From Macrostomum lignano (Eukaryota): a DNA stretch of 64,000 nucleotides. Positions 11,801 to 35,900 of this stretch are shown here, in pieces; position 1 is the stretch's first letter; each line of letters starts with the position of its first letter. The stretch covers positions 1 to 64,000 of the forward strand of contig NIVC01002225.1 in NCBI GenBank assembly GCA_002269645.1, in the 5' to 3' direction. Both the position numbers and the translations under genes were made by a program. A model generated the notes under the pieces. The model made no database searches. It was not told where the DNA came from and was given only the letters and a program-made list of their open reading frames with translations.

Positions 11801-12435
11801 TACTCTAACAGCCTCCTGACAGTACTCTAACAGCCTCGTGACAGTACTCTAACAGCCTCCTGACAGTACCCTAACAGCCTCGTGACAGTACTCTAACAGC
11901 CTCCTGACAGTACTCTAACAGCCTCCTGACAGTACTCTAACAGCCTCCTGACAGTACTCTAACAGCCTCCTGACAGTACTCTAACAGCCTCCTGACAGTA
12001 CTCTAACAGCCTCCTGACAGTATTCTAACAGCCTCCTGACAGTACCCTAACAGCCTCCTGACAGTACTCTAACAGCCTCGTGACAGTACTCTAACAGCCT
12101 CCTGACAGTACTCTAACAGCCTCCTGACAGTACCCTAACAGCCTCCTGACAGTACTCCAACAGCCTCCTGACAGTACCCTAACAGCCTCGTGACAGTACT
12201 CTAACAGCCTCCTGACAGTACCCTAACAGCCTCGTGACAGTACTCTAACAGCCTCCTGACAGTACCCTAACAGCCTCGTGACAGTACTCTAACAGCCTCC
12301 TGACAGTACTCTAACAGCCTCCTGACAGTACTCTAACAGCCTCCTGACAGTACTCTAACAGCCTCCTGACAGTACTCTAATAGCCTCCAGACAGAATGAA
12401 ATTCCTGACGCAATAGACTCACAGTCGTGACCCAT
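8869..12435 (-). CDS. inx: Innexin 2, exons 12435-12423 (micro-exon), 11512-11193 and 9869-8869; 1-nt frameshift at ~11295
   Basis: EDFADKV...PIQCYTPPEWPHPW(E)EYAENYCW requires one added G at tggaag. Phase-1 splice gives LN-YYQWVPF. FPRVTFCD...QCVLPLNILNEKLYIFLWFW present. Intron before the YYQW motif is at the same position as in innexin 1. Confidence 0.85.
10756..11188. repeat. 12-bp minisatellite (CAGATAGACAGG)n in the innexin 2 intron
   Basis: Visible tandem units abutting the donor site at 11192. Confidence 0.95.
11553..12390. repeat. 22-bp minisatellite (CAGCCTCCTGACAGTACTCTAA)n in innexin 2 intron 1
   Basis: Visible tandem units. Confidence 0.95.
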
Positions 12436-13080: not shown

Positions 13081-16000
13081 ATGGAGAGCCGATCTCATTA
13101 CATTGCCACGCAGAGGCGTTTAAAATTTATTGTAAGAGCTTTTAATATTGCTGATCGAGATGATTGCGTCATGGTCTCAGCCGATGAAGACGAACTGTTT
13201 AAGCAACATTGCCACACTGTAGACAGAATAGTGACAGCTCTGTGTCAGGCTGTAGACAGCAAACTGGATTTTGACTGTCCCTGCGGCAGTTTGACGTCCG
13301 CATTGCTCAGCATCTGCAGTCACCACATAGGCTTCCGCTGCTGTCAGAATGCTGTGGCAAAGTACGCGGCCACGAGTGACTTTTTTAGTTCGCTAGCGCA
13401 GCTCGACTGTGCCGCTGGAACGACTAAAAATTCGCCAGATTATAAAGGCCTGGTAACTGGAACTGTCTTTCTTGTGTAATATACTCACTTACTCACTCAC
13501 TCACTCATGAACTCACTCATGAACTCACTCATGAACTCACTTACTCACTCACTCACTCATGAACTCACTCATGAACTCACTCATGAACTCACTCATGAAC
13601 TCACTCATGAACTCACTTACTCACTCACTTACTCACTCACTCACTCATGAACTCACTCATGAACTCACTCATGAACTCACTCATGAACTCACTCATGAAC
13701 TCACTCATGAACTCACTCATGAACTCACTTACTCACTCACTCACTCATGAACTCACTCATGAACTCACTCATGAACTCACTCATGAACTCACTCATGAAC
13801 TCACTCATGAACTCACTCACTCATGAACTCACTCATGAAATCACTCATGAACTCACTCATGAACTCAATCATGAACTCACTCACTCACTCACTGATGAAC
13901 TCACTCATGAACTCACTTATTAACTCACTCATTAACTCACTCGTGAACTCACTTATGAGCTCACTCATTAACTCACTCATGAACTCACTCATGATCTCAC
14001 TCATGAACTCACTCATGAACTCACTCATGAACTCACTTATGAACTCACTCATGAACTCACTTACTCACTCACTCACTCATGAACTCACTCATGAACTCAC
14101 TCATGAACTCACTCATGAACTCACTCATGAACACACTCATGAACTCACTCATGAACTCACTCATGAACTCACTCATGAACACACTCATGAACTCACTCAT
14201 GAACTCACTCATGAACACACTCATGAACTCACTCATGAACTCACTGATGAACTCACTCATGAACTCACTCATGAACTCACTCATGAAATCACTCATGAAC
14301 TCACTCATGAACTCACTCATGAACTCACTCATGAACTCACTCATGAAATCACTCATGAACTCACTCATGAACTCACTCATGAACACATGACCTCACTTAT
14401 AAATTCGCTCATCAACTCGTGAACTCACTCAATCACTAATTCATAAACTTCAGCTTGTCGATCAGTGCCATTTCACAAGTAAGATCCGGTGCTTCATCAG
14501 TCTGGCTCATTCCGCTGTCTGCCTCTCCACTTCAATCGATTATGAATCGCTGCTGAGTCACCCGAGTTGGAAGTTTTTGGCGCACTGCCTCGCTAATATT
14601 GGCGATGACAGGATTGCAGAGCTGTTCTGGCAGCGAGCCTTGAAGCAAGCTGCGATCGACGGTCAACCAAAGCTAGTGGAGCGCTACCACAGCAAGCTGG
14701 CAGTCGGTCAACGCAGAAACGAGTTCTGTCAAGGCCTGATTGCTGATCTGGCCCTGCATGGCAACACTGCGGCGCTGCAGGCTTTGGCTGCAACAATTTC
14801 GGACGATCTTAAGAGAGACCTGTGCTGCAGTAAGTCGGCAGCCAAGGCTGCCCGTGCGGGCCGGTTCGAGGCTGCGGTTCAACTGTTGCTATGCATCGCT
14901 AAATCGTCGGGCACTCACTCGTACATCAGTATTCGGCGAGCATCAAATTTAATGAATCCAGTCAAGAGAAGATCTTTCGAAAAACTGTTGCTCATTGCTG
15001 AACAGAGGGGTCGGACGGAGGAGTTTCTGCGACTGGTGAAACATCTTGATGGGTAGGAGCCGGCTTGAGTAGTATTTCAACCATATGATTTTAACTGATA
15101 AAAACTGACTTGGAAAGCGATGCGCGTTACAGTAGCTACAGACCGGTAAACAAGTATTAATTGGGTTGTTAGGGTACATATTTAAGATGATAGATGACGT
15201 ACTGAAATGATTGAAGGGGTCCATAATGATGATAGAACAGGTGGTGAGACGATAGAACAGGTGGTGAGACGATAGAACAGGTGGTGAGACGATAGAACAG
15301 GTGGTGAGACGATAGAGCAGGTGGTGAGACGACAGAATAGGTGGTGAGACGATAGAACAGGTGGTGAGACGATAGAACAGGTGGTGAGACGATAGAACAG
15401 GTGGTGAGACGATAGAACAGGTGGTGAGACGATAGAGCAGGTGGTGAGACGATAGAACAGGTGGTGAGACGATAGAGCAGGTGGTGAGACGATAGAACAG
15501 GTGGTGAGACGATAGAACAGGTGGTGAGACGATAGAGCAGGTGGTGAGACGATAGAACAGGTGGTGAGACGATAGAACAGAAATGGAGACGATAGAACAG
15601 GTGGTGAGACGATAGAACAGGTGGTGAGACGATAGAACAGAAATGGAGACGATAGAACAGGTGGTGAGACGATAGAACAGGTGGTGAGACGATAGAACAG
15701 AAATGGAGACGATAGAACAGGTGGTGAGACGATAGAACAGACAATAGAAGAGACACTACATATATTACCGCACACCCCTTAGGACTTCTAATGAGCAGAT
15801 CTGTCTGAAATACCTGGCTGAAGTAGTCTTTTTCTCTGGCCGACTCCACCTGCTTCCATCTCTGGTGGCTGACTCGCCCAACCAGGGCGTGAAGATCCGC
15901 GTCCTTGGACTTTTATTAAACGAATCCGATGCGGTCACGGAGCAGCACATCGCGATTGGTCTGAAAATTTTACCTCGAATAGAAAGCCCAGCAAATCGTT

Positions 16001-19000
16001 GGCGGTTCTGCTTGGAGGCTGCCGAGAGAGTCGCCAGGTTAGGCCGCAGCAACCTTCTAGAAGAGCTGATCAAACTGCTGCCGCCTCCGCTTCCCGATGA
16101 TCAGCTTTTGGAGAGAAGAATTACTCCGAAGCAGAAATTGCTAATATTGGTAGCAGAAACCGCGGCAACCGGCGGCGACCTTCGGACTGCCGCTTGGGCG
16201 GCGGGGACTGCAGATTGTGCAGCAATGGAGGATCAGTGCCTCGACAGGGCCAGGCTGGCTGCACAGGCAAGACATCAACTGAGCGTGGCTGTCAGCCTGA
16301 CTCGACTGATTAAGGACGATGGAGCCAGGTAATAATTTTGATTCATTGTGGCTAAACTGGGAGGCTGAGGATTTGGGGATTGGGAAGCTGGGGATCGGGA
16401 ATCTGAGTATTTCCAGCTAAGAATCTGAGAATTACTCGTAAGAATCTGGGGATTAAGAATCTTGGGATTAAGAATCTAGGGATTAAGAATCTTGGGATTA
16501 AGAATCTGAGGATTAAGAATCTGAGGATTAAGAATCTGAGGATTAAGAATCTGAGGATTAAGAATCTGAGGATTAAGAATCTGAGGATTAAGAATCTGAG
16601 GATTAAGAATCTAGGGATTAAGAATCTTGGGATTAAGAATCTGGGGAAATAAGAATCTTGGGATTAAGAATCTGGGGATTAAGAATCTGAGGATTAAGAA
16701 TCTGAGGATTAAGAATCTGAGGATTAAGAATCTTGGGATTAAGAATCTGGGGAAATAAGAATCTTGGGATTAAGAATCTGAGGATTAAGAATCTGAGGAT
16801 TAAGAATCTGAGGATTAAGAATCTGAGGATTAAGAATCTGAGGATTAAGAATCTGAGGATTAAGAATCTGAGGATTAAGAATCTTGGGATTAAGAATCTG
16901 GGGAAATAAGAATCTTGGGATTAAGAATCTGAGGATTAAGAATCTGAGGATTAAGAATCTGAGGATTAAGAATCTGAGGATTAAGAATCTGAGGATTAAG
17001 AATCTGGGGATTAAGAATCTGAGGATTAAGAATCTGAGGATTAAGAATCTGAGGATTAAGAATCTGAGGATTAAGAATCTTGGGATTAAGAATCTGGGGA
17101 AATAAGAATCTTGGGATTAAGAATCTGAGGATTAAGAATCTGAGGATTAAGAATCTGAGGATTAAGAATCTGAGGATTAAGAATCTGAGGATTAAGAATC
17201 TGGGATTAAGAATCTGGGGATTAAGAATCTGAGGATTAAGAATCTGAGGATTAAGAATCTGAGGATTAAGAATCTGAGGATTAAGAATCTGAGGATTAAG
17301 AATCTGAGGATTAAGAATCTGGGGATTAAGAATCTGAGGATTAAGAATCTGAGGATTAAGAATCTGAGGATTAAGAATCTGAGGATTAAGAATCTGAGGA
17401 TTAAGAATCTGGGGATTAAGAATCTGAGGATTAAGAATCTGAGGATTAAGAATCTGAGGATTAAGAATCTGGGGATTAAGAATCTGAGGATTAAGAATCT
17501 GGGGATTAAGAATCTGAGGATTAAGAATCTGAGGATTAAGAATCTGAGGATTAAGAATCTGAGGATTAAGAATCTGGGGATTAAGAATCTGGGGATCGGA
17601 AATCTAGGCATTAAGAATCTGGGGATTAAGAATCTGAGGATTAAGAATCTGAGGATTAAGAATCTGAGGATTAAGAATCTGAGGATTAAGAATCTGGGGA
17701 TTAAGAATCTGGGGATCGGAAATCTAGGCATTAAGAATCTGGGGATTAAGAATCTGGGGATTAAGAATCTGAGGATTAAGAATCTGAGGATTAAGAATCT
17801 GAGGATTAAGAATCTGAGGATTAAGAATCTGAGGATTAAGAATCTGAGGATTAAGAATCTGAGGATTAAGAATCTGAGGATTAAGAATCTGAGGATTAAG
17901 AATCTGGGGATTAAGAATCTGAGGATTAAGAATCTGGGGATTACGAATCTGAGGATTAAGAATCTGGGGATCCGGGGATCAAGAATCTTGAATTGGGAAT
18001 CTGGGGATCGAAAATCCATATGAGAAATCCAGGACCGGGAGCTGCGATCATGGGCTGAAAAATCAGGCGACTGTAATGGGATCTGAGTTGAGCAGTTCGC
18101 CAATTCAGATAAGTGTACCCCTCGCTCAAATTTTACAGCGAGTCCGCAAGAGTAAACGCCTACAAAAACTGTCTAAAAAAATCTCAATCATCGCTAATCA
18201 TAAATGGAACAACAAACCATGGCATCTATCTGGCCGACAATTCGACGAAGAATTTGTACCTGCTGAAATTTTTAGCTGAAACTGTCGCCATAGGAGAGGA
18301 CTACTATGTAAAAGTAAGCAGCTACAGTATTAGATTTCGATCTATTCGGAAAGGAAAACAAAAACTTACAGGTTAAAAAGTATAGGTTTGAATGGGATGG
18401 GGTATACTAGCTTGCAATAAGTAACGGTCTATTTTTCTGTCTGTTCTCTGCCAAAGCAAGTAGTGATGCGCTCTTGCTTATTCTTATTGAGTAATAATCT
18501 TACTTATTAAATCGGTTCAGTTAAGTGTTCAACCATTCACCGTGATTGTGGGATTGGGCGGGTGCAATCTTATCGATTAACTTTGCGGTCGATTTTTACA
18601 GCCACCACCACTCTCTTTTTCAAGCTTCTGCTTGAACACGAGCGTTTTCATTAGCCAATAGCAGCTCTAGTCATGTGTTGGGGTGGGTGCAATCTTATCG
18701 ATTGACTATAGCCGACTGACTATCCAACCACCCAACCCTTTCCTGTGGGGTGGGTGCAATCTTATCGATTGACTATAGCCGACTGACTATTCAACCACCC
18801 AACCCTTTCCTGTGGGGTGGGTGCAATCTTATCGATTGACTATAGCCAACTGACTATTCAACCACCCAACCCTTTCCTGTGGGGTGGGTGCAATCTTATC
18901 GATTGACTATAGCCAACTGACTATTCAACCACCCAACCCTTTCCTGTGGGGTGGGTGCAATCTTATCTCTGGTTGAGTCAGCTTTACAGCCAGCCACACC

Positions 19001-22000
19001 CAGTCTATGATTAGCCTATTTACATGTAATTACCATTGGAAATAGCATTGGAATACCTTACGAAATTTAGGATGGGTTGCAATTTTATCGAGAAATTGAT
19101 TAATTAAGTAGTCTAAGTCACTTTTACAGCCACAAGCCTTTCTTTTTCTATTAGCAGCCTCAGCCCAACTTTGATTTTACACTTTAATAATGTAAACTGG
19201 TCGACTTCCCAGGAACTGGTCGATCTTAACCAGAACCTTAAACAGATTTCTTCGAAAAAAACTCTTGGAAAAACATTTGCGTGCAAGAAATACTTAGAAG
19301 ATCTTTTATAAATTGCGAATTGTTAATTTGCAAATATTAAAATAACATTCGATAACTTCATGCACTAACTACACTCAAGAACGAATGGCTATTGGTTATT
19401 TATTTATTCATGCTAAAATATTCAGAAAATCCTGCTCAACGCAAATCAGCACCAGCTTCATCAGCTGCTGTGCTCCAGCCTCTCTCACGGTCACTCCGCC
19501 CTGGCTACCGCCATATTGCCAAGTATTCAAGATGTCAACAAAAGGCTGGATGACCAACTCTGCAGCACTACTCTGATGCTTGCCGCCGAGCTGGGTCACT
19601 GCCACGTCATTGCCAAACTATTGGAGCGAGGAGCTGACAGAGCGGTGCGAGACACTCAGGGCTGCACAGCGCTGGACAGAGCTCGGCTGTGCGGGCGGAA
19701 CCAAGCAACTTGGGTGCTGGCAGAGGAGGGGAACGTTGAATTGACATCCCCTGCTTCAACTGGGTGAGTATAGTGTGTCAGTGTGTCAGTTTGAGCAGTT
19801 GGTCTTTTGACTCACTGACGCAAATTAAGTCATCAAATCATCAAATCAAATAAAATTAAATTCAAGAGTTGACTCAAAAGTTGTCAGTCAAGCTGTGCTT
19901 TTACCATTCTTGCCTTGCAGCATTCACTTTTAAAAATTCATTTCAGAACCTTTGAACAGGCAGTGCCTGAAAAGAGTCAAATGTGAGTACAATTACATCC
20001 TTTCCGCAATTAAGATTTGAATTGAACGCGAAGCTTCATAAATTAATCATTCGGCTTACCAAGATTTTCTATACATGGGGTAAGAGATGCTCACTACTAA
20101 AAAGCACAGTGCATGTATAGGCAATATATGCGCAGCTTAAAAAGCGATAATAAAGTTCGTCTCAACCTACCTGCAGTGACATTGACCTACACGATTCTCA
20201 GCTCAGCGAGAAGCTGCACTGGGCCCTCACGAGCTCCGGCTTCACCCAGAGCAGAGCGGCTTGTCAGCAGAGGCTGGCAGACTTACTGGAGCGGACAGCC
20301 GCTTGTCTGAGCCTCTCCAAACCCCGTCTGATCGGCAGCTTTGCTGACGGCTGGGGCTGCAGTCTGACAAGGCTGAATGCGAGGCTTTCTGATGGGTCCG
20401 GGATCGACTGGCTGACACCCGTTACGGCTGCTGCTGGCTGCCCAGGTGCGACCAAGCTGCGACTAGACTTCACCGGAGACCCTCCCGATAAAGAGGAGGG
20501 CGCCCAGCTGCTCACTGTAGAAGATGACGCATCGGGATGTGAGTCACAGCTGACCGCAATCAGCCGTAAATCATATCACCTATACGACTTAGTCGGTACC
20601 CAAAACTGTCAAACCATTTGTTGTCTTGCAGTTGGCCAGCAGCCTCCAGTGGCCTCAGCTCCGTGTGGTCTCAGGCCAGCTACCAGCACTACCTTGGCAT
20701 TTCGCAGTCCTCAATCAGCGAGCATTCTGCTCTTGCCTGTGGTTTCCATTCGTAATGCAGCCCTAATCCACCTGCAGCAGACATTCGCTCTCGAAGAGAA
20801 GCAGCGGATGCGACAGCTGAACACAGTCCAGGGCCAGCTGTTCATTCTGCTCAAGTTCCTACTCAAAAACTACCTGGCCGAGGTGTCGCAGTGTCCGGGA
20901 CTAACGAGTCATCACGTCAAGCACCTGCTGTTCTACCTGATTGAGACTCACGGCTCGTGGAACTGGCAAATGTGGCAGCCGCACAAGCTGATAGAGCTCG
21001 CCAAAGAGGCCCTGGACTTGATGATGAAGTTCCTGGACTCGACCAGCTCAAGTGATGATGGTTGCATGCCCAGCTTCTTCAAGCCACATGTTCAGCTGCA
21101 GCTACAATGGACTGGAAGACCTGCGGATGAGGCCAAGACTCGAATTCGAGCTGAGCTGCTCAAAGCTCGGAGTGACCTCGACCCCGCAGTCAAGAAGCTG
21201 ATGAGCCACCTGAAGCCTCTGGATGATGATGACAAGCTGTATTTCGACTTGTTCACTCTGCTACCTTTGACTCTGCCTCCCGATGTGCCTCATGACCGGA
21301 AATCGCAAGCTCCAGACGCTACTGAGCTCGCTGGACTTTACTGCTCAGTGGCGGCGGCTTTGCGAGCTCTGCAAGCTGCAGACGAAGTGGATGGCGAAGG
21401 AGCTCTAATGCGGCAGCTTGAAAGTTGGTACGAGTGCAGCTGGTGTCACTGCGCGGTCAGGTGTTTAGCTGTGATGGCGCAGCTGAAGTACAGGAACAAA
21501 ACTGCGGCGAAGGAGACGCTGAGCGAATTGGTAAGAGACCAGGTGAGAAAACGGCCTCATTTTTGGTGGCGAATTTCAGCTTCGATTGATGAACTAAACA
21601 GGGAAGATTCTAGTGACTCGATTTCTGAACATCTAAAACCCTCCCTTTATCAGGTGATGAGCAGCGGTTGGACGGTCGAAGACCTCAGCAAAGAGGCCAT
21701 ATCGGAGACTCAAAGCTGGCGATGGCCGTTGAGCACCGATTGGGCCTGGAGGTTCTGCCTGCCCTGCGACCGGCGGCCCAGCCTGCCGTTTCTACCCAGG
21801 TTCACCGAGTCGCTGCTCACTGCTCGACTCTGCAGCCGCTCACCGGTGCAGCGCCACCTGTACGTGAACTTCCGCTGTCTGAGCTGGAGTCTGCAAGCTG
21901 AGCTGCTGGGCGGTCGGCGCGCGGCATGCTTTCGAGCCGACGACGGAGCTGCGGGCTCGGGATTCGCCAAGAGGCTGGCGCAGCAGTGGTTCCGGGAGCT

Positions 22001-22211
22001 GCAGGCTGAGTCTGCGGGATCGCAGCTGGACACGGAGGAGCTGGCGACGCTGGCCCACTACACTGACAGCCCGGTGCACCTCCGCTTCTGCCTGGAGCGA
22101 ATGGAGGCGGTTGTTGCTAGGGGGCCACGGGTTGCCATGGACAGCTGCGACAACGAGAGGCTGGAGCGAGTCAGCAGGAAGTTGGGCCGCTTTGGTTGTT
22201 TTATTGGTTAA
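13081..22211 (+). CDS. Alpha-solenoid + ankyrin + Mab-21/cGAS-like (cGLR-type) protein, copy 1; exons 13081-13452, 14454-15052, 15783-16328, 18139-18313, 19426-19763, 20177-20538, 20632-21542, 21654-22211 (~1286 aa)
   Basis: All junctions are GT-AG and phase-consistent (0,2,2,0,2,1,0); total 3861 nt is divisible by 3. Ankyrin repeats TTLMLAAELGHCHVIAKLLERGAD and GCTALDRA. Mab-21 features LIGSFADGW..SGID, QGQLFILLKFLLK, LTSHHVKHLLFYL and MPSFF. Every exon has a paralogous exon in copy 2. Confidence 0.75.
13483..14430. repeat. 12-bp minisatellite (ACTCACTCATGA)n in cGLR-like copy 1 intron 1
   Basis: Visible tandem units; degenerate traces of the same motif at 23200-23380 in copy 2 intron 1. 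Confidence 0.95.
15233..15740. repeat. 20-bp minisatellite (GTGGTGAGACGATAGAACAG)n in copy 1 intron 2
   Basis: Visible tandem units. Confidence 0.95.
16420..17975. repeat. 15-bp minisatellite (GATTAAGAATCTGAG)n in copy 1 intron 3
   Basis: Visible tandem units. Confidence 0.95.
18681..18968. repeat. 67-bp tandem repeat (~4.3 copies) in copy 1 intron 4
   Basis: GGGTGGGTGCAATC recurs at 18681, 18748, 18815, 18882 and 18949. Confidence 0.9.
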
Positions 22212-22785
22212 ACTCGACCAAAGCGATTTAGAAAGGATGCTGTCTTTCGGTGGTGTTTTGGTGGTGCTTTTAGCAGAAAGACGTTTGTTCGGCTGCAACA
22301 TTGGACACAAAAAGAATTATATTATAATCTATGAAATTATTTCGATATCTAAAATATAGTGTCAAAAATATAATATTGCAGTTACGCATGGTTTATGCTA
22401 GATAGAGGTTTGACTTCGCGCTTCGGAAGAACCAAAGAATCCCTTCTGGAAAAAGCATATAGCTACTTTTAGTAGGCATAGATATGTTACTGCTCAAGCA
22501 TTATAGAATTGACATTGTTCCTACCTGAAGCAGATGTGCATTCCCGTTCACTGGCAGTAAGTACTCAGACACTGCAATGAACATGCAAAGTACATTCAAG
22601 CCGGAGAGAATGGACTCAGAGAGATGAGTTGGGCAGAAGTTGGCAAGGTGAGAAGAATGAGCCGAAAATAGCACACGCCAGAGGGCTATAACCGAATCAA
22701 ACCGAAAGTCAGACCTGCCAGTTCTGTGCAAGAAACATTTTCCCCAAGAAATTGCCAGACAAAGTGAATATTTCTTTTGGTTGCC

Positions 22786-25564
22786 ATGCAAGCAAATCGA
22801 TGCCTAGTAAGGCGCTTGAAGCTGCTCAGAAGAGCTTTGCGAATAGTCGATCAAGCTGACTGCAACAACGGAGACCAGCTGGATGACGAGACGATGCTCA
22901 AACGGCACTGCGACATCCTTGACAGCTTGGTGGACGCAACCAAAGATATTTTAAACTACCAGGCTACGATTTCTGAGCACCATTGTCAGTGCGTTTTGAT
23001 GGCACTGCTGAATATTACCCGTCACAGCGTCGGCAACAGGTGCTGTCAAAATGCTGTAGTGAAGTACGCGGCCACATGCGACAGAGAAGAAGCGCAACAG
23101 AGAGAGTCTAACAGTGCAACTGCTAATGGCCTGGACTGCTCAACTGCTCTGCCGCCCATGGTAACTAGCAGAGTGCACAGTCCATTGCTCTAGCCTATTC
23201 ACCCAATCATGAACTCATTCAGGAACTCACTATCTTTGAGGAATTGAACTCACTCGTGAATCCACTCTTAAACTCACTTGTCACCAAATCACTCATTGAA
23301 CTCAAATATGCCCTTACTAATGAATTCACTGATAAATTCACCATTCAACTCACTTATGAGCTCCACTATGAACTCAAATCTAGCAAGAACAAGTAAATCT
23401 ACAATCCGTAAAGTAAAGTAACGTAAAGTACGTAAAGTAACGTTCATTTTTCTGAACTTACGTTAATCAACCTTCAAGCTATATATTAGGTCATTGCTCC
23501 TCATATTACGTTTTCAATGGGAGGCAAGAACCAAAGCTTTTATGGAATCCAAAAAATCGACCCTTCCAGCCCGATGCGATTCGACGGGAGCTGCCGAACA
23601 GACGAGAAGAGTGCTACATCAGGCTGGCAGACGCCGCTGGCTCATTCGCCGTCTCAGTTCAAGACTCCTCCGCCGCGGAATCCAGTTGGAAAGTCCAAGG
23701 CCACTGCCTTAAGAAGCTGGCCAAATCGAGTTACCAACTGCAAGCTGCTTGCCGTTGCAGGGCCATTGAACAAGCTGCTCGGGATGGTCGGGTTGAGGTT
23801 CTCGATCGGTACATGCGAAAGGTGCCTGCGATGGATCGAAGCTTTTTGTGCACATGCTTGATTGAGGAGCTGGCACTGAGCGGCAAAGTGGACGCTCTGA
23901 GAACCCTGGCCATGGCAATGCGTGAAACGGACAGCAGAAACTGGTGCTGCTTTCGGATGGCAGCCAATGCCGCTCTTGCTGGACGTCTCGAAGCTTCCGT
24001 TCTGCTGCTTCAGAGCATCACCTTTGGCGACAAGTTGAGGAAAAAGTGCTGCAAGAGGCTGGTGCTCATTGCAGAGGAACAGCATCAGTTGGAAGAGCTT
24101 TTTTGGCTGCTTAAAAACACAAGCGCGTAAGCAATGTTAAAGTTCTGGATAACGCTTGTGGCTGTACCGGGACTATTTAGAAAGGCACTACCGACATTGG
24201 AGCAGTTTAAAAAAAAACTGTAGACATTGGAAATATTTTAAAACACTACGGATACTGGGTTCATTTTAGAAAGGCACTGCAGACCCTTTAGAAAGACACT
24301 TCAGACATCAGGACCCTTTAGAGAGACACTGCAGACACTGGGACCCTTTAGGAAGACACTACAGACATTAAGACCTTTTAGAAAGGCACTACAGACATTA
24401 GGACCCTTTACGAGGACACTGTAGACGTTGGGACCCTTTTTGAAGACACTGCAGACATTGGGACCCTATCGAAAGACACTACAGACATTAAGATCTTTTA
24501 GAAAGGCACTACAGACATTAGGACCCTTTATGAAGACACCGCAGTCATTGGGACCCTTTATGAAGACACTGCAGACAGTGATTATTTGGAAAGCCACAAT
24601 AAATCATTGTGATGTAACCGCCCTTGTCGCCTGTCCGCTCCGTAGAGAGACGAACGCATGACTAGAGGGGTATAAGACCGTAGGCTGCCTATGACCGGGC
24701 AATGACCTGACGGACCTCCAGCACCAGACTGTCCCGCCCACATGATTAATAGCTTTGGTAGCGCTTTGTGACCAGAGGGCCAAGGACCCACATGGACCCC
24801 ACCTGTAGCCAAGGTGCAATAGTTGGTCACTCGGTCATGGTATGACCGAGTGGCTGCCACCACTCTATGTGACCTGGCGCACCTAGATCTTACTACCAGA
24901 CCTCTCGAGGCTAGAGTCCCGCCTGGGATGGTTACCAGGAGATTTAGGCTAACAGGGGAGACGCATGCAGCCGAGTACAGGGACTCTGCTTGGGGAATGA
25001 TCGGGAACTCTGGGCTCAATCTGGAGGATTTCTCAGCAGGGGATCCTTTGTGGCTGTGAGCGAGGCTGACTTGCGACTTTGATTACTAAGAGTAGTATGA
25101 GACAAACATGTGCTGTCTCTAGTTTAGATTGCTCAGGGCGAAGGGACGCGTCAGCATGGGGTTGCAACCTTCCTACTGCCATTCTGTGCCAAGACTCGCT
25201 AATCCCTCTACTGCACGCACACACGGCCCCGAAGCACGCACTCACAGGCGGGCTTTGCACGGGGAGAGGCCAATTAGTTTACCCAACTTCCTTATGCTTT
25301 GCCATCCCGGGAGAAAGGCTTAGCAAGCCATGAGTGAAATGATGGTGAAAGAGTGGATAATGATGAGGTTAGTTAATAGTTAATAATTAGGCCCTTAGGC
25401 AAATAATCAGTCAATTAGGCGGCTTCACTATTGAGTAAAATACAGCAAAAAGTTACGGTATCACAATTGACTCAGCTCTCTAATTAAGCAATGGAAAATA
25501 GGCAAACCCCGGATAAGCAAGGGCGATTAGAGCACAAATTAGTAATAGAAACTTACCGGCAGCT

Positions 25565-25607
<43 letters not shown>

Positions 25608-28600
25608 GAGTGACCGAGGACGGCTTTAGGCTGCAGTCAGGCAGACAGTGAAGCGGCGATGCGCTGTAACTTGGCGGTATCAGACCGCGGACCGGCAGAG
25701 GTTCGTCCTATAGACGAATAGGTCAGATCAAGGTCTGACAGCAAGCCCCCAGTAGGGCGAGAAGGAACGCTTCGCCGAAGACTTTTGAGGATTCTCATGC
25801 CGAAAACCGCTTCCTTTTATAGCCTTCCCAGCCGCCGCTCCAAGGTCGTTTCCATGACTCCCTCTCTCTGATTGGCTGCCGGCAGAATGACGTCAGAATG
25901 AGTCATGATGAGAAGCATGAGACCGGCATAGCAACATGAGAAATGGGAGAATTGCGCAATCCGGAGGCGGGGTGGGGGGATAATTGGCGCAGCGGGAGGT
26001 CGCAAAAGTGTTGCGCAAGCAAACATTGAGAACAATGGGGCTGGGGTCGAGAACAAAGGAATTGGAAATCGTGGATAATTGGGGAGGATCGAGAACAATA
26101 GAAAAGCAAACATTGGAGAAAAGATGATAATTAGGTGCGAAAACGAGAACAAAAGAAAGAGAAAATCGGAGAAAATGTGATAATTGGTGGGGGTCGAGAG
26201 AACAAAAGAATCAAAAACGAGAACAATGGAAGCGGAGGTGGGGTGGGTGTCGCATGAGAAATTTGGGGAGGAGAACAATGGCGTGAGAAAAGGTTGCGCA
26301 AGAGAGGGGGATGAGTCATCAATGAGTCATCGAGGGGAAGAAGGGTCACACGACTTGCGTCACCGTTTAAGAGTTTGAGAAGGGATGGGGTGACGGTGAG
26401 CGCACAAAATACTGTAAGTAGACGCAGAGAAAGGGGGTACAGCGCAGGATGATAGTGCGAAAAGGGGCAAAAGAGGGGAGACAGGAAAAGTACATGAAGA
26501 ATAGGGCGGAGCGCAGAGGAGATAGGGTAGAGGGGGAGGTACAAAGAGGGAGGGGGAGCTCCGGAAAGGCAAGTGTGGCGGCAGGGGAGACGGAGCCAAG
26601 GCAGCAGGGGGGTGCAGCAGAGCGGGAGTCTCCAGGCCTGGTCGAAGACCTGGCCGAGTCTCAACAGCTCTGTGCAGGGGGTGCACGGCGATAGTAGGCA
26701 CTTTCGAAAAAGTTCCCCTGCCCTATCCCGCGACCAGAGCGTGGTTACATCAATTGGACCACTTTGGGAAGACACCGAGGCCAAAGAATAGACTGTACTC
26801 TGCAGATCAACTTCGCGGGCAACCCCTGGTGCTTGCAGGGTGCTCGAGCGGATCAACTGCCTGTGGATGCTGGCGGAGGCAGCCGCCAAGAACGGCTTCC
26901 TGGCGCTTCTCCCGGACGTCGCGGCGGCGGTAGCCAGCCTGACATTCAAGAGCGGCATTGTGGTCCTACTCATTCAGAAATCTGCCGCACCAACTGAGCA
27001 GCGCCTGAGAACCGCGATGAAGATTCTGCCGCAGATTAAGGATGCCGCTGAGCGGAGCCATCTCTTTCAGATTTTGGTCAGGTGCGCTGCTCGTTTTGGA
27101 AGTTGCGTCCTCATAGAAGAAACGCTGGGCCTGCTGCCAAGCGAGTCCGAGGACGGGGACTCGACAGCTGAGCCGTCGCACCGAGACGAGCTGCTGTCTG
27201 CGGCTGCAGAGGCTGCGGCCGGTGGGGGCAAACTGGAGACAGCGATCTGGGCCGCTGAGGCCATCGACAGCGAATCAGAGGCGCATCTGTGCCTGGCTGC
27301 GGCAGCTGAGGCAGCTCAGATGAGCAACCGGCTTGATGAGGCTGTCAGCCTGGCTCGGCTGATCAAGGATGCCAGCGTCAGGTGGGGTCGGGGTGTCAGA
27401 TGTAGTAAATTCTGGACGTGGAAATTGAGAACTGGGGAAGTGGGAATTGAGGATGTGGGGATAGGGGATGTGGGGGTTGGAGCTGTGGGAGTTAAGGATG
27501 TGGGAGTTCGGGGATGTGGGAGTTTGGGATGTGGGAGTTAAGGATGTGGGAGTTCGGGGATGTGGGAGTTTGGGATGTGGGAGTTCGGGGATGTAGGAGT
27601 TGAGGATGTGGGATTTGGGGATGTGGGAGTTGAGGGTGTGGGAGTTGGGGATGTGGGAATTTGGGATGTGGGAGTTGGGGATGTGGGAGTTGAGATGTGG
27701 GAGTTGGGGATGTGGGAGTTGGGTTGTGGGAGTTAAGGATGTGGGAGTTCGGGGATGTGGGAGTTTGGGATGTGGGAGTTGGGGATGTGGGAGTTGAGAT
27801 GTGGGAGTTGGGGATGTGGGAGTTGGGTTGTGGGAGTTGGGGATGTGGGAATTGGGGATGTGGGAATTGGGGAAATCCTCTACATGCTATTGAGACTTTA
27901 GAATCAAGGGATTAAGGAAAAATCAGATGCTTGGATTTTTAATTAATAATTTGCGAATTGCGAGGCTGAGCAACTTACTCTCACTACTCAAACTCAATCA
28001 ATCAGAAAGTCAGCTCAGGTCAGGGCCTACAGACGCTGTCTGCCAGAGCAGCAGGTAGCCGAGCTCAGTGAGACCGTTGTTAATCATGGCTGCTTCCTGG
28101 CGGACAATTGTATCACGAATTCAAGCCTGCTGGCTCTTGTGGCTGCTACAGTTGCCATGGGCGACCAGTTCTACCTGCAGGTCTGCAACTGCTGTGATGT
28201 CTATTAAAAGCTATCCACAATTTCATATGCATACATTTCGAAATATTAATTAGGAAATCCTGCTCAACGCAAATCAGCACCAGCTTCATCAGCTGCTGTG
28301 CTCCAGCCTCTCTCACGGTCACTCCGCCCTGGCTACCGCCATATTGCCAAGTATTCAAGATGTCAACAAAAGGCTGGATGACCAACTCTGCAGCACTCCT
28401 TTGATGCTTGCCGCCGAGCTGGGTCACTGCCACGTCATTGCCAAACTATTGGAGCGAGGAGCTGACAGAGCGGTGCGAGACACTCAGGGCTGCACAGCGC
28501 TGGACAGAGCTCGGCTGTGCGGGCGGAACCAAGCAACTTGGGTGCTGGCAGAGGAGGGGAACGTTGAATTGACATCCCCTGCTTCAACTGGGTGAGTATA

Positions 28601-31600
28601 GTGTGTCAGTGTGTCAGTTTGAGCAGTTGGTCTTTTGACTCACTGACGCAAATTAAGTCATCAAATCATCAAATCAAATAAAATTAAATTCAAGAGTTGA
28701 CTCAAAAGTTGTCAGTCAAGCTGTGCTTTTACCATTCTTGCCTTGCAGCATTCACTTTTAAAAATTCATTTCAGAACCTTTGAACAGGCAGTGCCTGAAA
28801 AGAGTCAAATGTGAGTACAATTACATCCTTTCCGCAATTAAGATTTGAATTGAACGCGAAGCTTCATAAATTAATCATTCGGCTTACCAAGATTTTCTAT
28901 ACATGGGGTAAGAGATGCTCACTACTAAAAAGCACAGTGCATGTATAGGCAATATATGCGCAGCTTAAAAAGCGATAATAAAGTTCGTCTCAACCTACCT
29001 GCAGTGACATTGACCTACACGATTCTCAGCTCAGCGAGAAGCTGCACTGGGCCCTCACGAGCTCCGGCTTCACCCAGAGCAGAGCGGCTTGTCAGCAGAG
29101 GCTGGCAGACTTACTGGAGCGGACAGCCGCTTGTCTGAGCCTCTCCAAACCCCGTCTGATCGGCAGCTTTGCTGACGGCTGGGGCTGCAGTCTGACAAGG
29201 CTGAATGCGAGGCTTTCTGATGGGTCCGGGATCGACTGGCTGACACCCGTTACGGCTGCTGCTGGCTGCCCAGGTGCGACCAAGCTGCGACTAGACTTCA
29301 CCGGAGACCCTCCCGATAAAGAGGAGGGCGCCCAGCTGCTCACTGTAGAAGATGACGCATCGGGATGTGAGTCACAGCTGACCGCAATCAGCCGTAAATC
29401 ATATCACCTATACGACTTAGTCGGTACCCAAAACTGTCAAACCATTTGTTGTCTTGCAGTTGGCCAGCAGCCTCCAGTGGCCTCAGCTCCGTGTGGTCTC
29501 AGGCCAGCTACCAGCACTACCTTGGCATTTCGCAGTCCTCAATCAGCGAGCATTCTGCTCTTGCCTGTGGTTTCCATTCGTAATGCAGCCCTAATCCACC
29601 TGCAGCAGACATTCGCTCTCGAAGAGAAGCAGCGGATGCGACAGCTGAACACAGTCCAGGGCCAGCTGTTCATTCTGCTCAAGTTCCTACTCAAAAACTA
29701 CCTGGCCGAGGTGTCGCAGTGTCCGGGACTAACGAGTCATCACGTCAAGCACCTGCTGTTCTACCTGATTGAGACTCACGGCTCGTGGAACTGGCAAATG
29801 TGGCAGCCGCACAAGCTGATAGAGCTCGCCAAAGAGGCCCTGGACTTGATGATGAAGTTCCTGGACTCGACCAGCTCAAGTGATGATGGTTGCATGCCCA
29901 GCTTCTTCAAGCCACATGTTCAGCTGCAGCTACAATGGACTGGAAGACCTGCGGATGAGGCCAAGACTCGAATTCGAGCTGAGCTGCTCAAAGCTCGGAG
30001 TGACCTCGACCCCGCAGTCAAGAAGCTGATGAGCCACCTGAAGCCTCTGGATGATGATGACAAGCTGTATTTCGACTTGTTCACTCTGCTACCTTTGACT
30101 CTGCCTCCCGATGTGCCTCATGACCGGAAATCGCAAGCTCCAGACGCTACTGAGCTCGCTGGACTTTACTGCTCAGTGGCGGCGGCTTTGCGAGCTCTGC
30201 AAGCTGCAGACGAAGTGGATGGCGAAGGAGCTCTAATGCGGCAGCTTGAAAGTTGGTACGAGTGCAGCTGGTGTCACTGCACGGTCAGGTGTTTGGCTGT
30301 GATGGCGCAGCTGAAGTACAGGAACAAAACTGCGGCGAAGGAGACGCTGAGCGAATTGGTGAGACATCAGGTGAGAAATGTGACCCGCTTTGGTGATAGG
30401 TATCACACAATTTTAGTGTTGCCGAGACTGGGGGTCAAGTAAAGTTCTCCATGACTCATTGTAGCTTCACTTATAAAGCAATCAAGCACCAATGCGATCA
30501 GCCTCCATTGCTTCGGTAGGTATGAGAGGCTTTCAGTAGAAATTTCCCAACAAGCTCAACATCCCAAGATACATATAATCACCACCGAGCTCGATCGATT
30601 GTTGCGATTGTTGGAAGGCTTCTCAGGACTCGTTCCTACTCCAGTCGCAGTGTTGACAATGATCTGATTACGGGAAAGCTTAAATGACCTCTGCTACACC
30701 GGACTTTGCTTGACCTTAAATGACCTTTGCCTTATCTGATGGTTGAACTTACGTCATTTTCGTCAAGGGAGTGGAAAACTTACCAGCTTCTAGAGGTTAA
30801 AAAATAAACTGTACTGTTGAGATTAAAATGACCTTGGAGCAGGTGCACTACAGGATGTAAACGTAAAAGCGTGTTGATAAAAAAGGTGAAAGCATGTGCT
30901 CGAGCAGAGATGTACGTCCACTGACATTTATTTTTGAAAACACTTCGTACGTTTCGGAAGCTTTTTGATAGCAGATTGTGATGAAGAAGGCCGTAACAAT
31001 CAGCTCCGTGCTACATGTAGATGTAGATATTGTTAACTGCCACGCCAAGACCAAAGATCAGAGCGGAGCGGTGGGTCTTAGGGGTGATTGTGCCTTCCGA
31101 ATAACCGAGACCAGATTCTTGGCTAGGATACTGAAGACGCAAGTCAACTTCAGAGCTAAGAGATTCAATTGGCTTGTTAAGAAGAGGGCTTTGCGATAAA
31201 CCAGGATGCCATTGCACAGGCGTTTCAGACCTCACAAGGCCACTTAGCGTACTTATTCAGTAGGACTGCAATTCAAGTTGTGACTATGGGTTCCAGACGT
31301 CAGTAAAAGGCACCGAGAATTGTTTTGGTTAAGCCAATGCAAAGACAGCAGCTAAGGGCTGTAAAGACTCAAGCATGCATGAAATCAACAAGCATTGCTC
31401 ACTTGTTAAATGCTATCATAACAATTCCAGGAGATGAGCAGCGGTTGGACGGTCGAAGACCTCAGCAAAGAGGCCATATCGGAGACTCAAAGCTGGCGAT
31501 GGCCGTTGAGCACCGATTGGGCCTGGAGGTTCTGCCTGCCCTGCGACCGGCGGCCCAGCCTGCCGTTTCTACCCAGGTTCACCGAGTCGCTGCTCACTGC

Positions 31601-31997
31601 TCGACTCTGCAGCCGCTCACCGATGCAGCGCCACCTGTACGTGAACTTCCGCTGTCTGAGCTGGAGTCTGCAAGCTGAGCTGCTGGGCGGTCGGCGCGCG
31701 GCATGCATTCGAGCCGACGACGGAGCTGCGGGCTCGAGATTCGCCAAGAGGCTGGCGCAGCAGTGGTTCCGGGAGCTGCAGGCTGAGTCTGCGGGATCGC
31801 AGCTGGACACGGAGGAGCTGGCGACGCTGGCCCACTACACTGACAGCCCGGTGCACCTCCGCTTCTGCCTGGAGCGAATGGAGGCGGTTGTTGCTAGGGA
31901 GCCACGGGTTGCCATGGACAGCTGCGACAACGAGAGGCTGGAGCGAGTCAGGAGGAAGCTGGACAGCTTTGATCGCTGCTTCCTAGCTTTTAGTTGA
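22786..31997 (+). CDS. Alpha-solenoid + ankyrin + Mab-21/cGAS-like protein, copy 2; exons 22786-23160, 23570-24126, 26839-27381, 28006-28180, 28254-28591, 29005-29366, 29460-30370, 31431-31997 (~1275 aa)
   Basis: Same eight-exon structure and intron phases as copy 1; exon 4 is 175 nt in both. Total 3828 nt. Exons 5-7 are near-identical to copy 1 at offset 8828 bp. Confidence 0.75.
24170..24580. repeat. Degenerate ~30-bp tandem repeat in copy 2 intron 2
   Basis: Recurrent ggaccctttagaaagacactgcagacatt variants. Confidence 0.8.
24610..26752 (-). mobile_element. Putative solo LTR (~2.1 kb) in intron 2 of cGLR-like copy 2
   Basis: Termini TGATGTAACC...GGTTACATCA form a perfect 10-bp inverted repeat (TG...CA). 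4-bp TSD ATTG at 24606-24609 and 26753-26756. TATAAAA on the minus strand near 25820. Confidence 0.65.
27440..27872. repeat. 15-bp G-rich minisatellite (GATGTGGGAGTTGGG)n in copy 2 intron 3
   Basis: Visible tandem units. Confidence 0.9.
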
Positions 31998-32936: not shown

Positions 32937-35900
32937 TCACAGAGCCGTGTAATACTTCTTCTTTTTCTTCTTCTTTTGCTGCTCAGAATCTGCTCTGGGT
33001 CTGTCAGCTTCCATTGGCTTCATCTCCACAGACACCTGCAAGGAATTTAGGGATATTTATAAGAGATTTAAGGAGGAATTTTTATTATTCCAAAATGGGA
33101 TTTGATTATTCTAATAGGGGATTTGATAATTCTAATAGAGGATTTGATTATTCTAATAGAGGATTTGATTATTCTAATAGAGGATTTGATTATTCTAATA
33201 GAGGATTTGATTATTCTAATAGAGGATTTGATTATTCTAATAGAGGATTTGATTATTCTAATAGAGGATTTGATTATTCTAATAGAGGATTTGATTATTC
33301 TAATAGAGGATTTGATTATTCTAATATGGGATTTGATTATTCTAATAAGGGATTTGATTATTCTAATAGAGGATTTGATTATTCTAATAGAGGATTTGAT
33401 TATTCTAATAGAGGATTTGATTATTCTAATATGGGATTTGATTATTCTAATAGGGGATTTGATTATTCTAATAGGGGATTTGATTATTCTAATAGGGGAT
33501 TTGATTATTCTAATAGGGGATTTGATTATTCTAATAAGGGATTTGATTATTCTAATAAGGGATTTGATTATTCTAATATGGGATTTGATTATTCTAATAG
33601 GGGATTTGATTATTCTAATAGGGGATTTGATTATTCTAATAGGGGATTTGATTATTCTAATAGGGGATTTGATTATTCTAATATGGGATTTGATTACTCT
33701 AATAGCGGATTTGATTATTCTAATATGGGATTTGATTACTCTAATAGCGGATTTGATTATTCTAATATGGGACTCGAAAGTTTGATTAGGTGATCTGAAG
33801 GTTTCAATTCGAGTTTCTAATGGTAAATTTAAATATTTTGGTATTTAAAGTCCAATCGAATAGTTGGGATTTCAGAATCGAATAGGGGATTCCAGGCTCT
33901 TACCTGATTAGGTTTGACAGCCTCATCGGCGCTTCCGCCGCCTCCTTGAGCAACAAAGTTGAGCAGCTCCCTCTGGCCTGTCCGCTGGAAGTGCACGCTG
34001 ATCGGTGGCCATTCGCCGCGTTCGAGTTTTAGTTGCCGGGCCACTCGCTCGAACTCCTTGGGCTTGCTGATCAACCGGCGACCAGCCCGGTGGACGAGTC
34101 GGCTGAACCAGACGGACTCAACTAGTTGCTCAACCAGAAACGCGATCAGAAAGTTCATCAGGATGGCGCCGACAAGGACAAATTTTATTGACAGATTTGG
34201 GTTGTCTCGGGGCGCGTCCCAGGTCTGCGGGTTGCGGACAGCGGGACGGGGACTTGACCTTGAATGACCTTTGCTTCACCTGACTATGGTTGACCTTAAA
34301 TGACCCCTGCTACACCTGACAATGGTTGATCTAGTATGACCATTGCTTCACCTGACTATTGTTGACCTTGTATGACCTCCGCTATACCTATGGTTGACCT
34401 TGACCTTTGCTACACCTGACTATGGTTGACCTTAAATGACCTCTGCTACACCTGACGATGGTTGACCTTAAATGACCCCTGCTACACCTGACAATGGTTG
34501 ATCTAGTATGACCATTGCTTCACCTGACTATTGCTGACCTTGTATGACCTCCGCTATACCTATGGTTGACCTTGACCTCTGCTACACCTGACTATGGTTG
34601 ACCTTGAATGACCTCTGCTACACGTGCCTAGTAGTCCCTTGACTCCATACGACTTCGAACGCAACAACAAAAGTACACGATGTGATAAATTTAATGTAGC
34701 AAATTAATTCACCTCTAGCAAGTTTCCCAGCCAATCAGTGGGAGCGAAGATCACATAGAGATTAACACCAACTACTATAGCGATGTTGATCATGAAAGCG
34801 TCTGGAATAGCAAATATTGCACAAGAAGGATTATGATTTGAGTCTTATCTAGAAGTAATAATCGCTTTATAACTACCTTGCCTAGATAAAACTTCCTATA
34901 AGAATTATGTTATTATGGCTAAAGCTTCCCGTCAGGAATCATTGACTTCATAAGCTTCCCAAATGAAATTGATGACTTCATTTGCTTCCTCAGATGAAGA
35001 TAATCATTCCAAAAGCTTCCCATACGGAAACAATGATCCCAAAAGCTTTCCATACAGAAAAAATGATTCCAAAAGCTTCCCATACGGAAACAATGATTCT
35101 AAAAGCTTCCCATACGGAAACAATGATTCTAAAAGCTTCCCATACGGAAACAACGATTCTAAAGCTTCCCATACGGAAACAACGATCCCAAAAGCTTCCC
35201 ATACGGAAACAATGATTCCAAAAGCTTCCCATACGGAAACAACGATTCTAAAGCTTCCCATACGGAAACAACGATCCCAAAAGCTTCCCATACGGAAACA
35301 ATGATTCCAAAAGCTTCCCATACGGAAACAACGATTCTAAAGCTTCCCATACGGAAACAACGATCCCAAAAGCTTCCCATACGGAAACAATGATTCCAAA
35401 AGCTTCCCATACGGAAACAACGATTCCAAAAGCTTTCCATACGGAAACAACGATCCCAAAAGCTTCCCATACGGAAACAATGATTCCAAAAGCTTCCCAT
35501 ACGGAAACAACGATCCTAAAAGCTTCCCATACGGAAACAACGATCCCAAAAGCTTCCCATACGGAAACAACGATCCCAAAAGCTTCCCATACGGAAACAA
35601 CGATTCCAAAAGCTTCCCATACGGAAACAACGACCCCAAAAGCTTCCCATACGGAAAAATTATTCTAAAAGCTTCCCATACGGAAACAACGATCCCAAAA
35701 GCTTCACATACGGAAACAACGATTCTAAAAGCTTCACATACTGAAACAACGATCCCAAAAGCTTCACATACGGAAACAACGATCCCAAAAGCTTCACATA
35801 CGGAAACAACGATTCTAAAAGCTTCCCAAACGGAAATAATAACCGACTGACTCACAGTTGGTCAGCATGCTCCGTCTGTAAGGAGCGGACTTGGAGAACA

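Follow-up and report, generated by a model that had tools for sequence, protein, structure and literature searches.

A tandem pair of ankyrin-fused cGAS-like (Mab-21) genes with a degenerate active site and near-identical 3' halves in Macrostomum lignano

Here we describe two head-to-tail genes on the forward strand of a 64,000-nt stretch of DNA from the flatworm Macrostomum lignano (GenBank assembly GCA_002269645.1, contig NIVC01002225.1, positions 1 to 64,000; hereafter the window), copy 1 at 13081-22211 and copy 2 at 22786-31997. Each is predicted to encode a protein that runs from a long array of helical repeats through canonical ankyrin (ANK) repeats and a domain of the Mab-21/cGAS-like receptor (cGLR) type into a C-terminal helical extension. 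We place high confidence in this identity and architecture of the pair. On balance we favour the fuller reading in which the two are intact tandem duplicates within a M. lignano-specific ankyrin-fused cGAS-like (Mab-21) family, have lost catalysis, and have had their 3' halves converted. The features on which the argument draws are as follows.

13081-22211, + strand: copy 1 gene, 1282 aa; exons 13081-13452, 14466-15052, 15783-16328, 18139-18313, 19426-19763, 20177-20538, 20632-21542 and 21654-22211; stop TAA
22786-31997, + strand: copy 2 gene, 1275 aa; exons 22786-23160, 23570-24126, 26839-27381, 28006-28180, 28254-28591, 29005-29366, 29460-30370 and 31431-31997; stop TGA
13081-18313, + strand: copy 1 exons 1-4, helical repeat array of ~560 aa; degenerate 'CC'-type ankyrin-like repeats, e.g. 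KRDLCCSKSAAKAARAGRFEAAVQLL at 14823-14888
22786-28180, + strand: copy 2 exons 1-4, the same array; ~40% protein identity to copy 1, DNA unalignable
19426-19763, + strand: copy 1 exon 5, canonical ankyrin repeats (TLMLAAELGH…, GCTALDRARLCG…); Pfam Ank_2
28254-28591, + strand: copy 2 exon 5, canonical ankyrin repeats; Pfam Ank_5, Ank_2 and Ank over cut-off
20177-21119, + strand: copy 1 Mab-21/cGLR-type domain; LIGS within 20328-20354, SGIDW 20397-20411, RPATSTT 20673-20693, Mab-21_C lobe 20856-21119
29005-29950, + strand: copy 2 Mab-21/cGLR-type domain; LIGS within 29156-29182, SGIDW 29225-29239, RPATSTT 29501-29521
21120-22211, + strand: copy 1 C-terminal helical extension, family-specific; DWAWRFCLPCD 21738-21770, HLYVNFRCLSWSLQAELL 21855-21908
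19420-22194, + strand: near-identity tract, against copy 2 28249-30378 plus 31428-31971

Exon joins were obtained by enumerating the GT…AG pairs that preserve the frames of the conserved open reading frame (ORF) blocks and were then refined with UniProt models. Both copies resolve into eight exons with GT-AG borders throughout and consistent phases, and intron positions and phases are common to the two. A first-pass annotation of this DNA, made by a model from the letters and a list of ORFs, had proposed eight exons per copy and proteins of ~1280 aa, and the gene models agree with it; its coordinates, 13081-31997, run exactly from the ATG of copy 1 to the stop of copy 2, and both peptides that it quoted are present in copy 2, in exon 3 (26839-27381) and exon 2 (23945-24010). 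Several UniProt M. lignano models (P0013-P0018, P0026) are near-identical to pieces of the window, with the copy 1 junctions matching models P0014, P0015 and P0016 and the copy 2 junctions matching P0017, P0026 and P0015. Full-length UniProt models of both genes are already deposited as uncharacterised proteins, and the independent predicted models A0A1I8H6N7 (1171 aa) and A0A1I8IWB7 (1189 aa) join the same parts. The model A0A1I8IUE2 spans the 3' half of copy 1 into the 5' half of copy 2 and keeps the copy-specific residues; the tandem order is therefore present in another assembly too. No further copies of the gene were found within the 64-kb window.

A few junctions deserve comment. The exon 5 acceptor in the UniProt models lies at 19425 in copy 1 and 28253 in copy 2, while the exon 2 acceptor of copy 1 has two candidates, 14453 or 14465. 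Intron 6 is a 93-nt in-frame piece with a GTGAGT donor and a strong, pyrimidine-rich acceptor; it is removed in the UniProt models, and its position is exactly that of an intron in paralogue P0007 from the NCBI assembly. At the site of intron 7 the copies differ, with 111 nt in copy 1 (21543-21653) against 1060 nt in copy 2 (30371-31430). The copy 1 sequence is in frame, lacks a stop, and carries a GTGAGA donor and a CAG acceptor, such that it is spliced out or possibly retained; the extra sequence in copy 2 has only a short match, to a repeat at ~34.3-34.6 kb.

The two to three ankyrin repeats expected from the first pass are found in exon 5, where Ank-family Pfam matches exceed the cut-off in both copies: Ank_2 in copy 1 (E 1.9e-6, 28.8 bits vs a cut-off of 27.3), and Ank_5 (28.7 vs 27), Ank_2 (28.4 vs 27.3) and Ank (25.4 vs 21.1) in copy 2. 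Upstream, the AlphaFold2 (AF2) model of the copy 1 N-terminus has 28 helices across residues 129-589, or ~14 hairpins with a period of ~33 aa, predicted with a local-distance confidence (pLDDT) of 70-91 across residues 130-500; the first helix of these hairpins is longer than in classical ANK. The array gave no match in Pfam directly, and its profile gave none in a word-indexed search or against PDB sequences. An exhaustive HMMER search of 1.84 billion representatives with a two-copy N-terminal profile found 13 proteins, namely the window genes' own models, M. lignano P0019-P0024 (E 9e-17 to 1e-7) and one bacterial TPR protein. P0019-P0024 carry perfect 33-aa repeats, 'RDQCC.(E/K)AA.SAA.NGHLEVVKFLV…', which Pfam assigns to Ank_2/Ank_4 over multiple stretches, and in P0020 (PAA62074.1, 1217 aa) and P0021 (A0A1I8JJ31, 1355 aa) the same repeat arrays are followed by canonical ANK and then by a Mab-21 domain. 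A repeat-unit hidden Markov model (HMM) built from those paralogues matched to differing degrees, strongly in P0007, at an intermediate level in P0021 and weakly in the window genes, where the best matches are KRDLCCSKSAAKAARAGRFE (independent E-value, iE, 8e-4) and RNWCCFRMAANAALAGRLE (iE 1.4e-3). In P0007 the repeats and the ANK region lie within one exon.

Given this homology to the Pfam-positive ankyrin repeats of paralogues, the array is read as ankyrin-type; in our view the 'solenoid' is most likely a decayed array of this type that runs on into the canonical repeats of exon 5, rather than the separate TPR/HEAT-like module that the first pass had supposed. Like TPR, HEAT and ARM alpha-solenoids, the array is predicted to form stacked helical hairpins, and it matches the one bacterial TPR protein at E 2e-5. 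It differs from them in having 33-aa repeats of ankyrin type as its clear homologues. We rejected assignment to TPR or HEAT specifically, there being no Pfam TPR/HEAT match and only generic solenoids (HAT/TPR, HEAT and ARM proteins) among the Foldseek matches of the N-terminal model, at template modelling (TM) scores of <= 0.34. The bacterial protein itself, P0025, belongs with its cluster to Bacteroidota metagenome proteins and has repeats 'IAVELARAGRYEQAIQLAESI' that match the window repeat motif 'SAAKAARAGRFEAAVQLLLCI'; this likeness is probably convergence of helical-repeat motifs.

Downstream of the ankyrin repeats, the Mab-21/cGLR-type domain of copy 2 is identical in protein sequence to that of copy 1 throughout. 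A core profile of 8 family members, searched against all PDB sequences, matched only cGLR1 (8gjy, E 2.2e-6), many cGAS chains (2e-4 to 1e-3) and MAB21L1 (0.11). An hhalign comparison with 8 bivalve cGLRs from Table S3 of Li et al. gave 99.1% probability (E 1.2e-18, 177 columns); the alignment reaches from the strand that bears the third catalytic Asp, whose column is matched, across the helical lobe. The comparison of N-lobe-only profiles is weak (E 6e-4), but GS…EG[WF] and SDxD are in register, and the N-lobe of the window genes is clearly homologous to that of M. lignano paralogues in the published catalogue. Homology to cGLRs thus extends over the nucleotidyltransferase core and the C-terminal helix bundle. 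Of the Mab-21 assignment made in the first pass, the relation to cGLRs is upheld by the cGLR1/cGAS and hhalign profile matches, while the specific family that it named, PF03281 (Mab-21 nucleotidyltransferase), found no match at E <= 1 in the window proteins or the tested paralogues. Mab-21_C (PF20266) scores 23.8-23.9 bits in ORF fragments of the window genes and 21.6 in a 640-aa construct, against a gathering score of 24.1; in paralogues it reaches 24.6-29.6 bits, several over the cut-off. The C-terminal extension has no Pfam match, is kept in all paralogues and is helical in the AF2 model. The order proposed at the outset, helical repeats, two to three ANK, a Mab-21/cGLR-type domain and a C-terminal helical extension, is therefore the one found.

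Enzymes of the cGLR class share the motif h[QT]GS X8-20 [DE]h[DE]h X50-90 h[DE]h (Li et al., 2023; PMC9980059), and mutation of one key residue in it abolishes activity (Li et al., 2023, Fig. S5A legend; PMC9980059). At the corresponding positions the window genes read LIGS, X20, GIDW, ~X59, TST (… GSGIDW … RPATSTT): both copies have Ile for [QT] before GS, Gly for the first acid and Ser for the third, at residues 725, 748 and 812 of copy 1 respectively, with no acidic residue nearby in the third strand and a ~35-aa deletion after it. GS and the second acid (GID) are retained. Neither window gene thus has the cGLR active-site motif of Li et al. (2023), and the family at large does, with ~40 members showing MTGS/FGS …[DE]SD[IV]D… P..D[TLI] and a paralogue pattern of MTGS…DIDW…QDT. 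Nearly all paralogues keep the full motif. A second degenerate member is P0052 (UniProt A0A1I8FRH8), a M. lignano protein encoded outside the window, whose metal site reads …GKDSIKW… and RPSQEI; catalytic residues have therefore been lost more than once in the family. Sequencing error was rejected as a source of the window substitutions, which are present in both copies and in three models of another assembly.

Cyclic dinucleotide synthesis by cGAS-type nucleotidyltransferases proceeds by two-metal nucleotidyl transfer. With one of three acids left, the two-metal transfer of cGAS and cGLRs would not be possible, and the proteins are therefore most likely non-catalytic; judged from these residues, we regard loss of catalysis in both window genes as probable. 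The first pass had pictured a conserved signalling module making cyclic dinucleotides, and that picture is made unlikely by the replacement of two of the three catalytic acids and the failure of the enzyme motif.

The fusion itself, which the first pass called unfamiliar, has precedent. More than 3000 cGLRs have been catalogued, 87% of them single-domain, with TPR or ankyrin fusions among the others (Li et al., 2023, Cell; preprint PMC9980059); the catalogue includes proteins of M. lignano. Rows 89-93 of Table S3 are M. lignano proteins cloned for the screen, none of which bears the label given to the 15 active enzymes, and Table S2 lists Ank_2 matches upstream of the cGLR domain in PAA58690.1 (residues 16-557) and PAA67649.1 (16-426) (Li et al., 2023; PMC9980059). 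The proteins in rows 92 and 93 (PAA93208.1 and PAA68676.1), chosen for that screen as predicted cGLRs, are close paralogues of the window genes and fall in the same subfamily as P0001-P0012. Consistent with a species-specific family, the large ORF at 20649-22211 has homologues only among M. lignano proteins of 660-893 aa that carry ANK and Mab-21_C (~37% identity, E down to 3e-83). The ANK-cGLR fusion is therefore already on record in M. lignano, and the window pair are catalytically degenerate members of a published species-specific family; what is new here is the degenerate active site and the near-identity of the 3' halves, which points to conversion.

Related systems compare as follows. 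The M. lignano ANK-cGLRs (PAA58690.1, PAA67649.1, PAA68676.1, PAA93208.1, PAA62074.1 and A0A1I8JJ31) share with the window genes the species, the domain order, the C-terminal helical extension and one intron position, with Mab-21 halves 33-42% identical; they differ in that the window genes lack [QT] and the first and third acids, carry the ~35-aa deletion, and have N-terminal repeats too degenerate for Pfam. With cGAS and animal cGLRs (human and mouse cGAS, 8gjy, bivalve and coral cGLRs) the helical lobe and the strand of the third catalytic residue align by profile, and the signatures 'WRISF/LRVSF…E+' and 'SYH.KT' are common to both; unlike them, the window genes have an incomplete active site, a large N-terminal array and a ~300-aa C-terminal extension, and they are known from sequence alone. 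MAB21L1/MAB21L2 (PDB 5eog) offer the parallel of a cGAS-like domain thought to be non-catalytic and to act in another mode, having no predicted functional active site (Li et al., 2023; PMC9980059), but they are distant in sequence (E 0.11) and are single-domain, conserved developmental proteins rather than lineage-specific tandem repeat fusions.

The 5' and 3' halves of the genes compare very differently between the copies. In a DNA self-comparison, 19420-21550 and 28249-30378 are 99.6% identical and 21651-22194 and 31428-31971 are 98.3% identical; exons 5-8 of the two copies share 98-100% DNA identity. There are zero differences from codon 50 (exon 5) to codon 506 of exons 5-8, a run of ~1.9 kb that includes introns 5 and 6. 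Near-identity sets in 6 nt ahead of exon 5 and tails off close to the stop codon, and in the flanks of the identical portion the copies show ~10 non-synonymous vs ~4 synonymous differences. Exons 1-4, by contrast, retain ~40% protein identity (collinear, 35-60%), with unalignable introns and DNA, saturated synonymous sites, and no stop or frameshift. The contrast between variable 5' and near-identical 3' halves, in line with the first-pass picture of a variable sensor joined to a conserved module, is thus real. Intact frames over ~560 diverged codons argue that the genes have been maintained, and the simplest reading of the sequence contrast would be that the duplication is old and that the 3' half has undergone gene conversion only recently.

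Four other explanations bear weighing against that reading. It is unlikely, in our judgement, that the genes are decaying duplicates without function, on the way to becoming unprocessed pseudogenes and with their active site eroded already. The lost catalytic residues, the strongly degenerate N-terminal repeats and the excess of non-synonymous differences flanking the identical tract would all agree with decay, as would the fact that identical proteins were found only among older UniProt models and not in the NCBI annotation, which is transcript-guided. However, each copy holds ~1280 open codons over 8 exons with 28 of 28 splice sites intact, and the 5' halves have kept the reading frame at ~40% identity while their introns became unalignable, for which purifying selection on the frame is needed.

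It is appreciably less probable that the near-identity is an assembly artefact, in which, for instance, two diverged 5' halves were given one and the same 3' half, the genome being polyploid and full of repeats, without any conversion. A run of ~1.9 kb free of differences even in its introns, in a minisatellite-rich genome, is what such an error could produce; yet model P0015, from an older independent assembly, runs from the copy 1 3' half to the 5' half of copy 2 and has the same residues specific to each copy, and bordering the tract there are scattered real differences as well as the 111-nt vs 1060-nt intron difference.

We consider it very improbable that the genes encode active cGLR pattern-recognition enzymes, which is in essence how the first pass read them. 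On this view the array would sense a ligand and the Mab-21 domain would make a cyclic dinucleotide that activates STING. The family is cGLR-derived, paralogues with the full motif were chosen as predicted cGLRs by Li et al. (2023), and GS and the second acid persist in the window genes. Set against this, two of three acids and [QT] are replaced in both copies and in independent assemblies, a single key motif mutation suffices to abolish activity, and no M. lignano protein in Table S3 rows 89-93 is labelled active (Li et al., 2023; PMC9980059). About as improbable is a split of each copy into two genes, with exons 1-4 encoding a helical-repeat protein and exons 5-8 a shorter ANK-Mab-21 protein like the 770-800-aa 'MAIEG…' paralogue models. 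Several NCBI paralogue models (P0002, P0003) do begin just 5' of the ANK repeats, and the near-identity tract starts at exon 5. However, exon 5 has no in-frame ATG ahead of the ANK repeats, exon 4 is homologous to the interior of longer paralogues, the splice donor and acceptor agree in phase in both copies, the parts are joined in UniProt models, and the 1217- and 1355-aa paralogues hold repeats, ANK and Mab-21 in one protein.

Several points also weigh against the explanation that we favour, intact duplicates with a catalytically dead domain and converted 3' halves. The mostly non-synonymous differences in the flanks would also fit relaxed constraint, and support for the exon joins and for expression comes from prediction, here and in other gene models. 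PF03281 is not matched and Mab-21_C falls marginally below its cut-off in the window genes, while the N-terminal array has no direct match in Pfam or among PDB sequences and its model resembles only generic solenoids (TM <= 0.34). Furthermore, the AF2 model of the Mab-21 half (13 sequences) has a mean pLDDT of 50.9, with core residues 46-204 below 50 and unfolded, and a Foldseek search of this low-confidence model against PDB returned nothing at E < 0.6; the putative cGAS-like fold is thus an assignment that stands on profile evidence only.

Each gene, then, encodes ~14 predicted hairpins of degenerate ankyrin type followed by two to three canonical ANK, a cGLR/Mab-21-type domain and family-specific C-terminal helices. 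The repeat array may provide an interaction surface that binds a partner or ligand, and the probably dead Mab-21 domain, together with the C-terminal helices, could act as a scaffold, or else could regulate active ANK-cGLR paralogues or be a decoy for them, for instance if it paired or competed with them; such a scaffold or regulator role, read from domain content, is one that we put forward tentatively. The repeat arrays would have diverged earlier, with recent gene conversion or unequal exchange homogenising exons 5-8. Bolder, and in our view quite unlikely, is the idea that a lineage of dead ANK-cGLRs is under selection as non-enzymatic receptors, or as decoys or regulators of active ANK-cGLR paralogues, in which the recognition arrays are free to diversify and conversion keeps the output half, made up of ANK, dead Mab-21 domain and C-terminal helices, uniform from one neighbour to the other.

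The surroundings of the pair are rich in repeats and in unrelated genes. Introns and flanks are full of long minisatellites (13499-14384, 15231-15740, 16439-17971 and 27433-27873, as well as 12000-12394 and 33080-33772), with units that include a 12-mer x73, a 20-mer x25, a 15-mer x102 and a 15-mer x29, and these yield long spurious ORFs on both strands. Upstream lie an intron-less cytochrome P450 ORF of 507 aa (2768-4291, - strand; PF00067, E 4e-101) and two convergent innexin genes (6029-7690, + strand, and 8869-9855, - strand; PF00876, E 1e-61 and 2e-54), the first innexin ORF (6029-7690) being preceded by a Ser/Leu-rich low-complexity stretch. Downstream, exons of a P-type (E1-E2) ATPase occupy 35815-37290 and 46309-47597 (- strand), a spread of more than 10 kb (PF00122, with E 5e-18 at 46309-46836), and a 2-kb repeat block rich in Ser, Pro and Leu lies between these exons and past them, at 49-51 kb; an ORF with a fibrinogen C-terminal globular domain lies at 43868-44332 (+ strand; PF00147, E 7e-30), adjoined by tandem repeats at 42.4-43.9 kb. 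Finally, a retrotransposon pol region at 56987-60604 (- strand) encodes reverse transcriptase, RNase H and integrase zinc-binding domains in two adjoining ORFs and looks like a Ty3/gypsy-type element, going by these predicted domains.

The value of the locus is incremental, the architecture and the family being already on record; what it offers is an illustration of the family's evolution, in which genes duplicate in tandem, repeat arrays decay, the catalytic triad is lost and 3' halves become homogenised. Mab-21-like proteins apart, cGLRs are stated to be absent from most platyhelminths (Li et al., 2023; PMC9980059), and M. lignano, with its large ankyrin-fused cGLR family, is an exception among flatworms. 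Were selection acting on a lineage of dead ANK-cGLRs, the pair would represent a 'variable sensor, concerted output' arrangement, recalling immune receptors that work in pairs or as decoys, and this in a phylum from which cGLR signalling is otherwise said to be largely gone. RNA interference and transgenesis are established in M. lignano; if the inactive copies are expressed, they would make a tractable pseudo-cGLR case, and could show how ANK-cGLR fusions are regulated.

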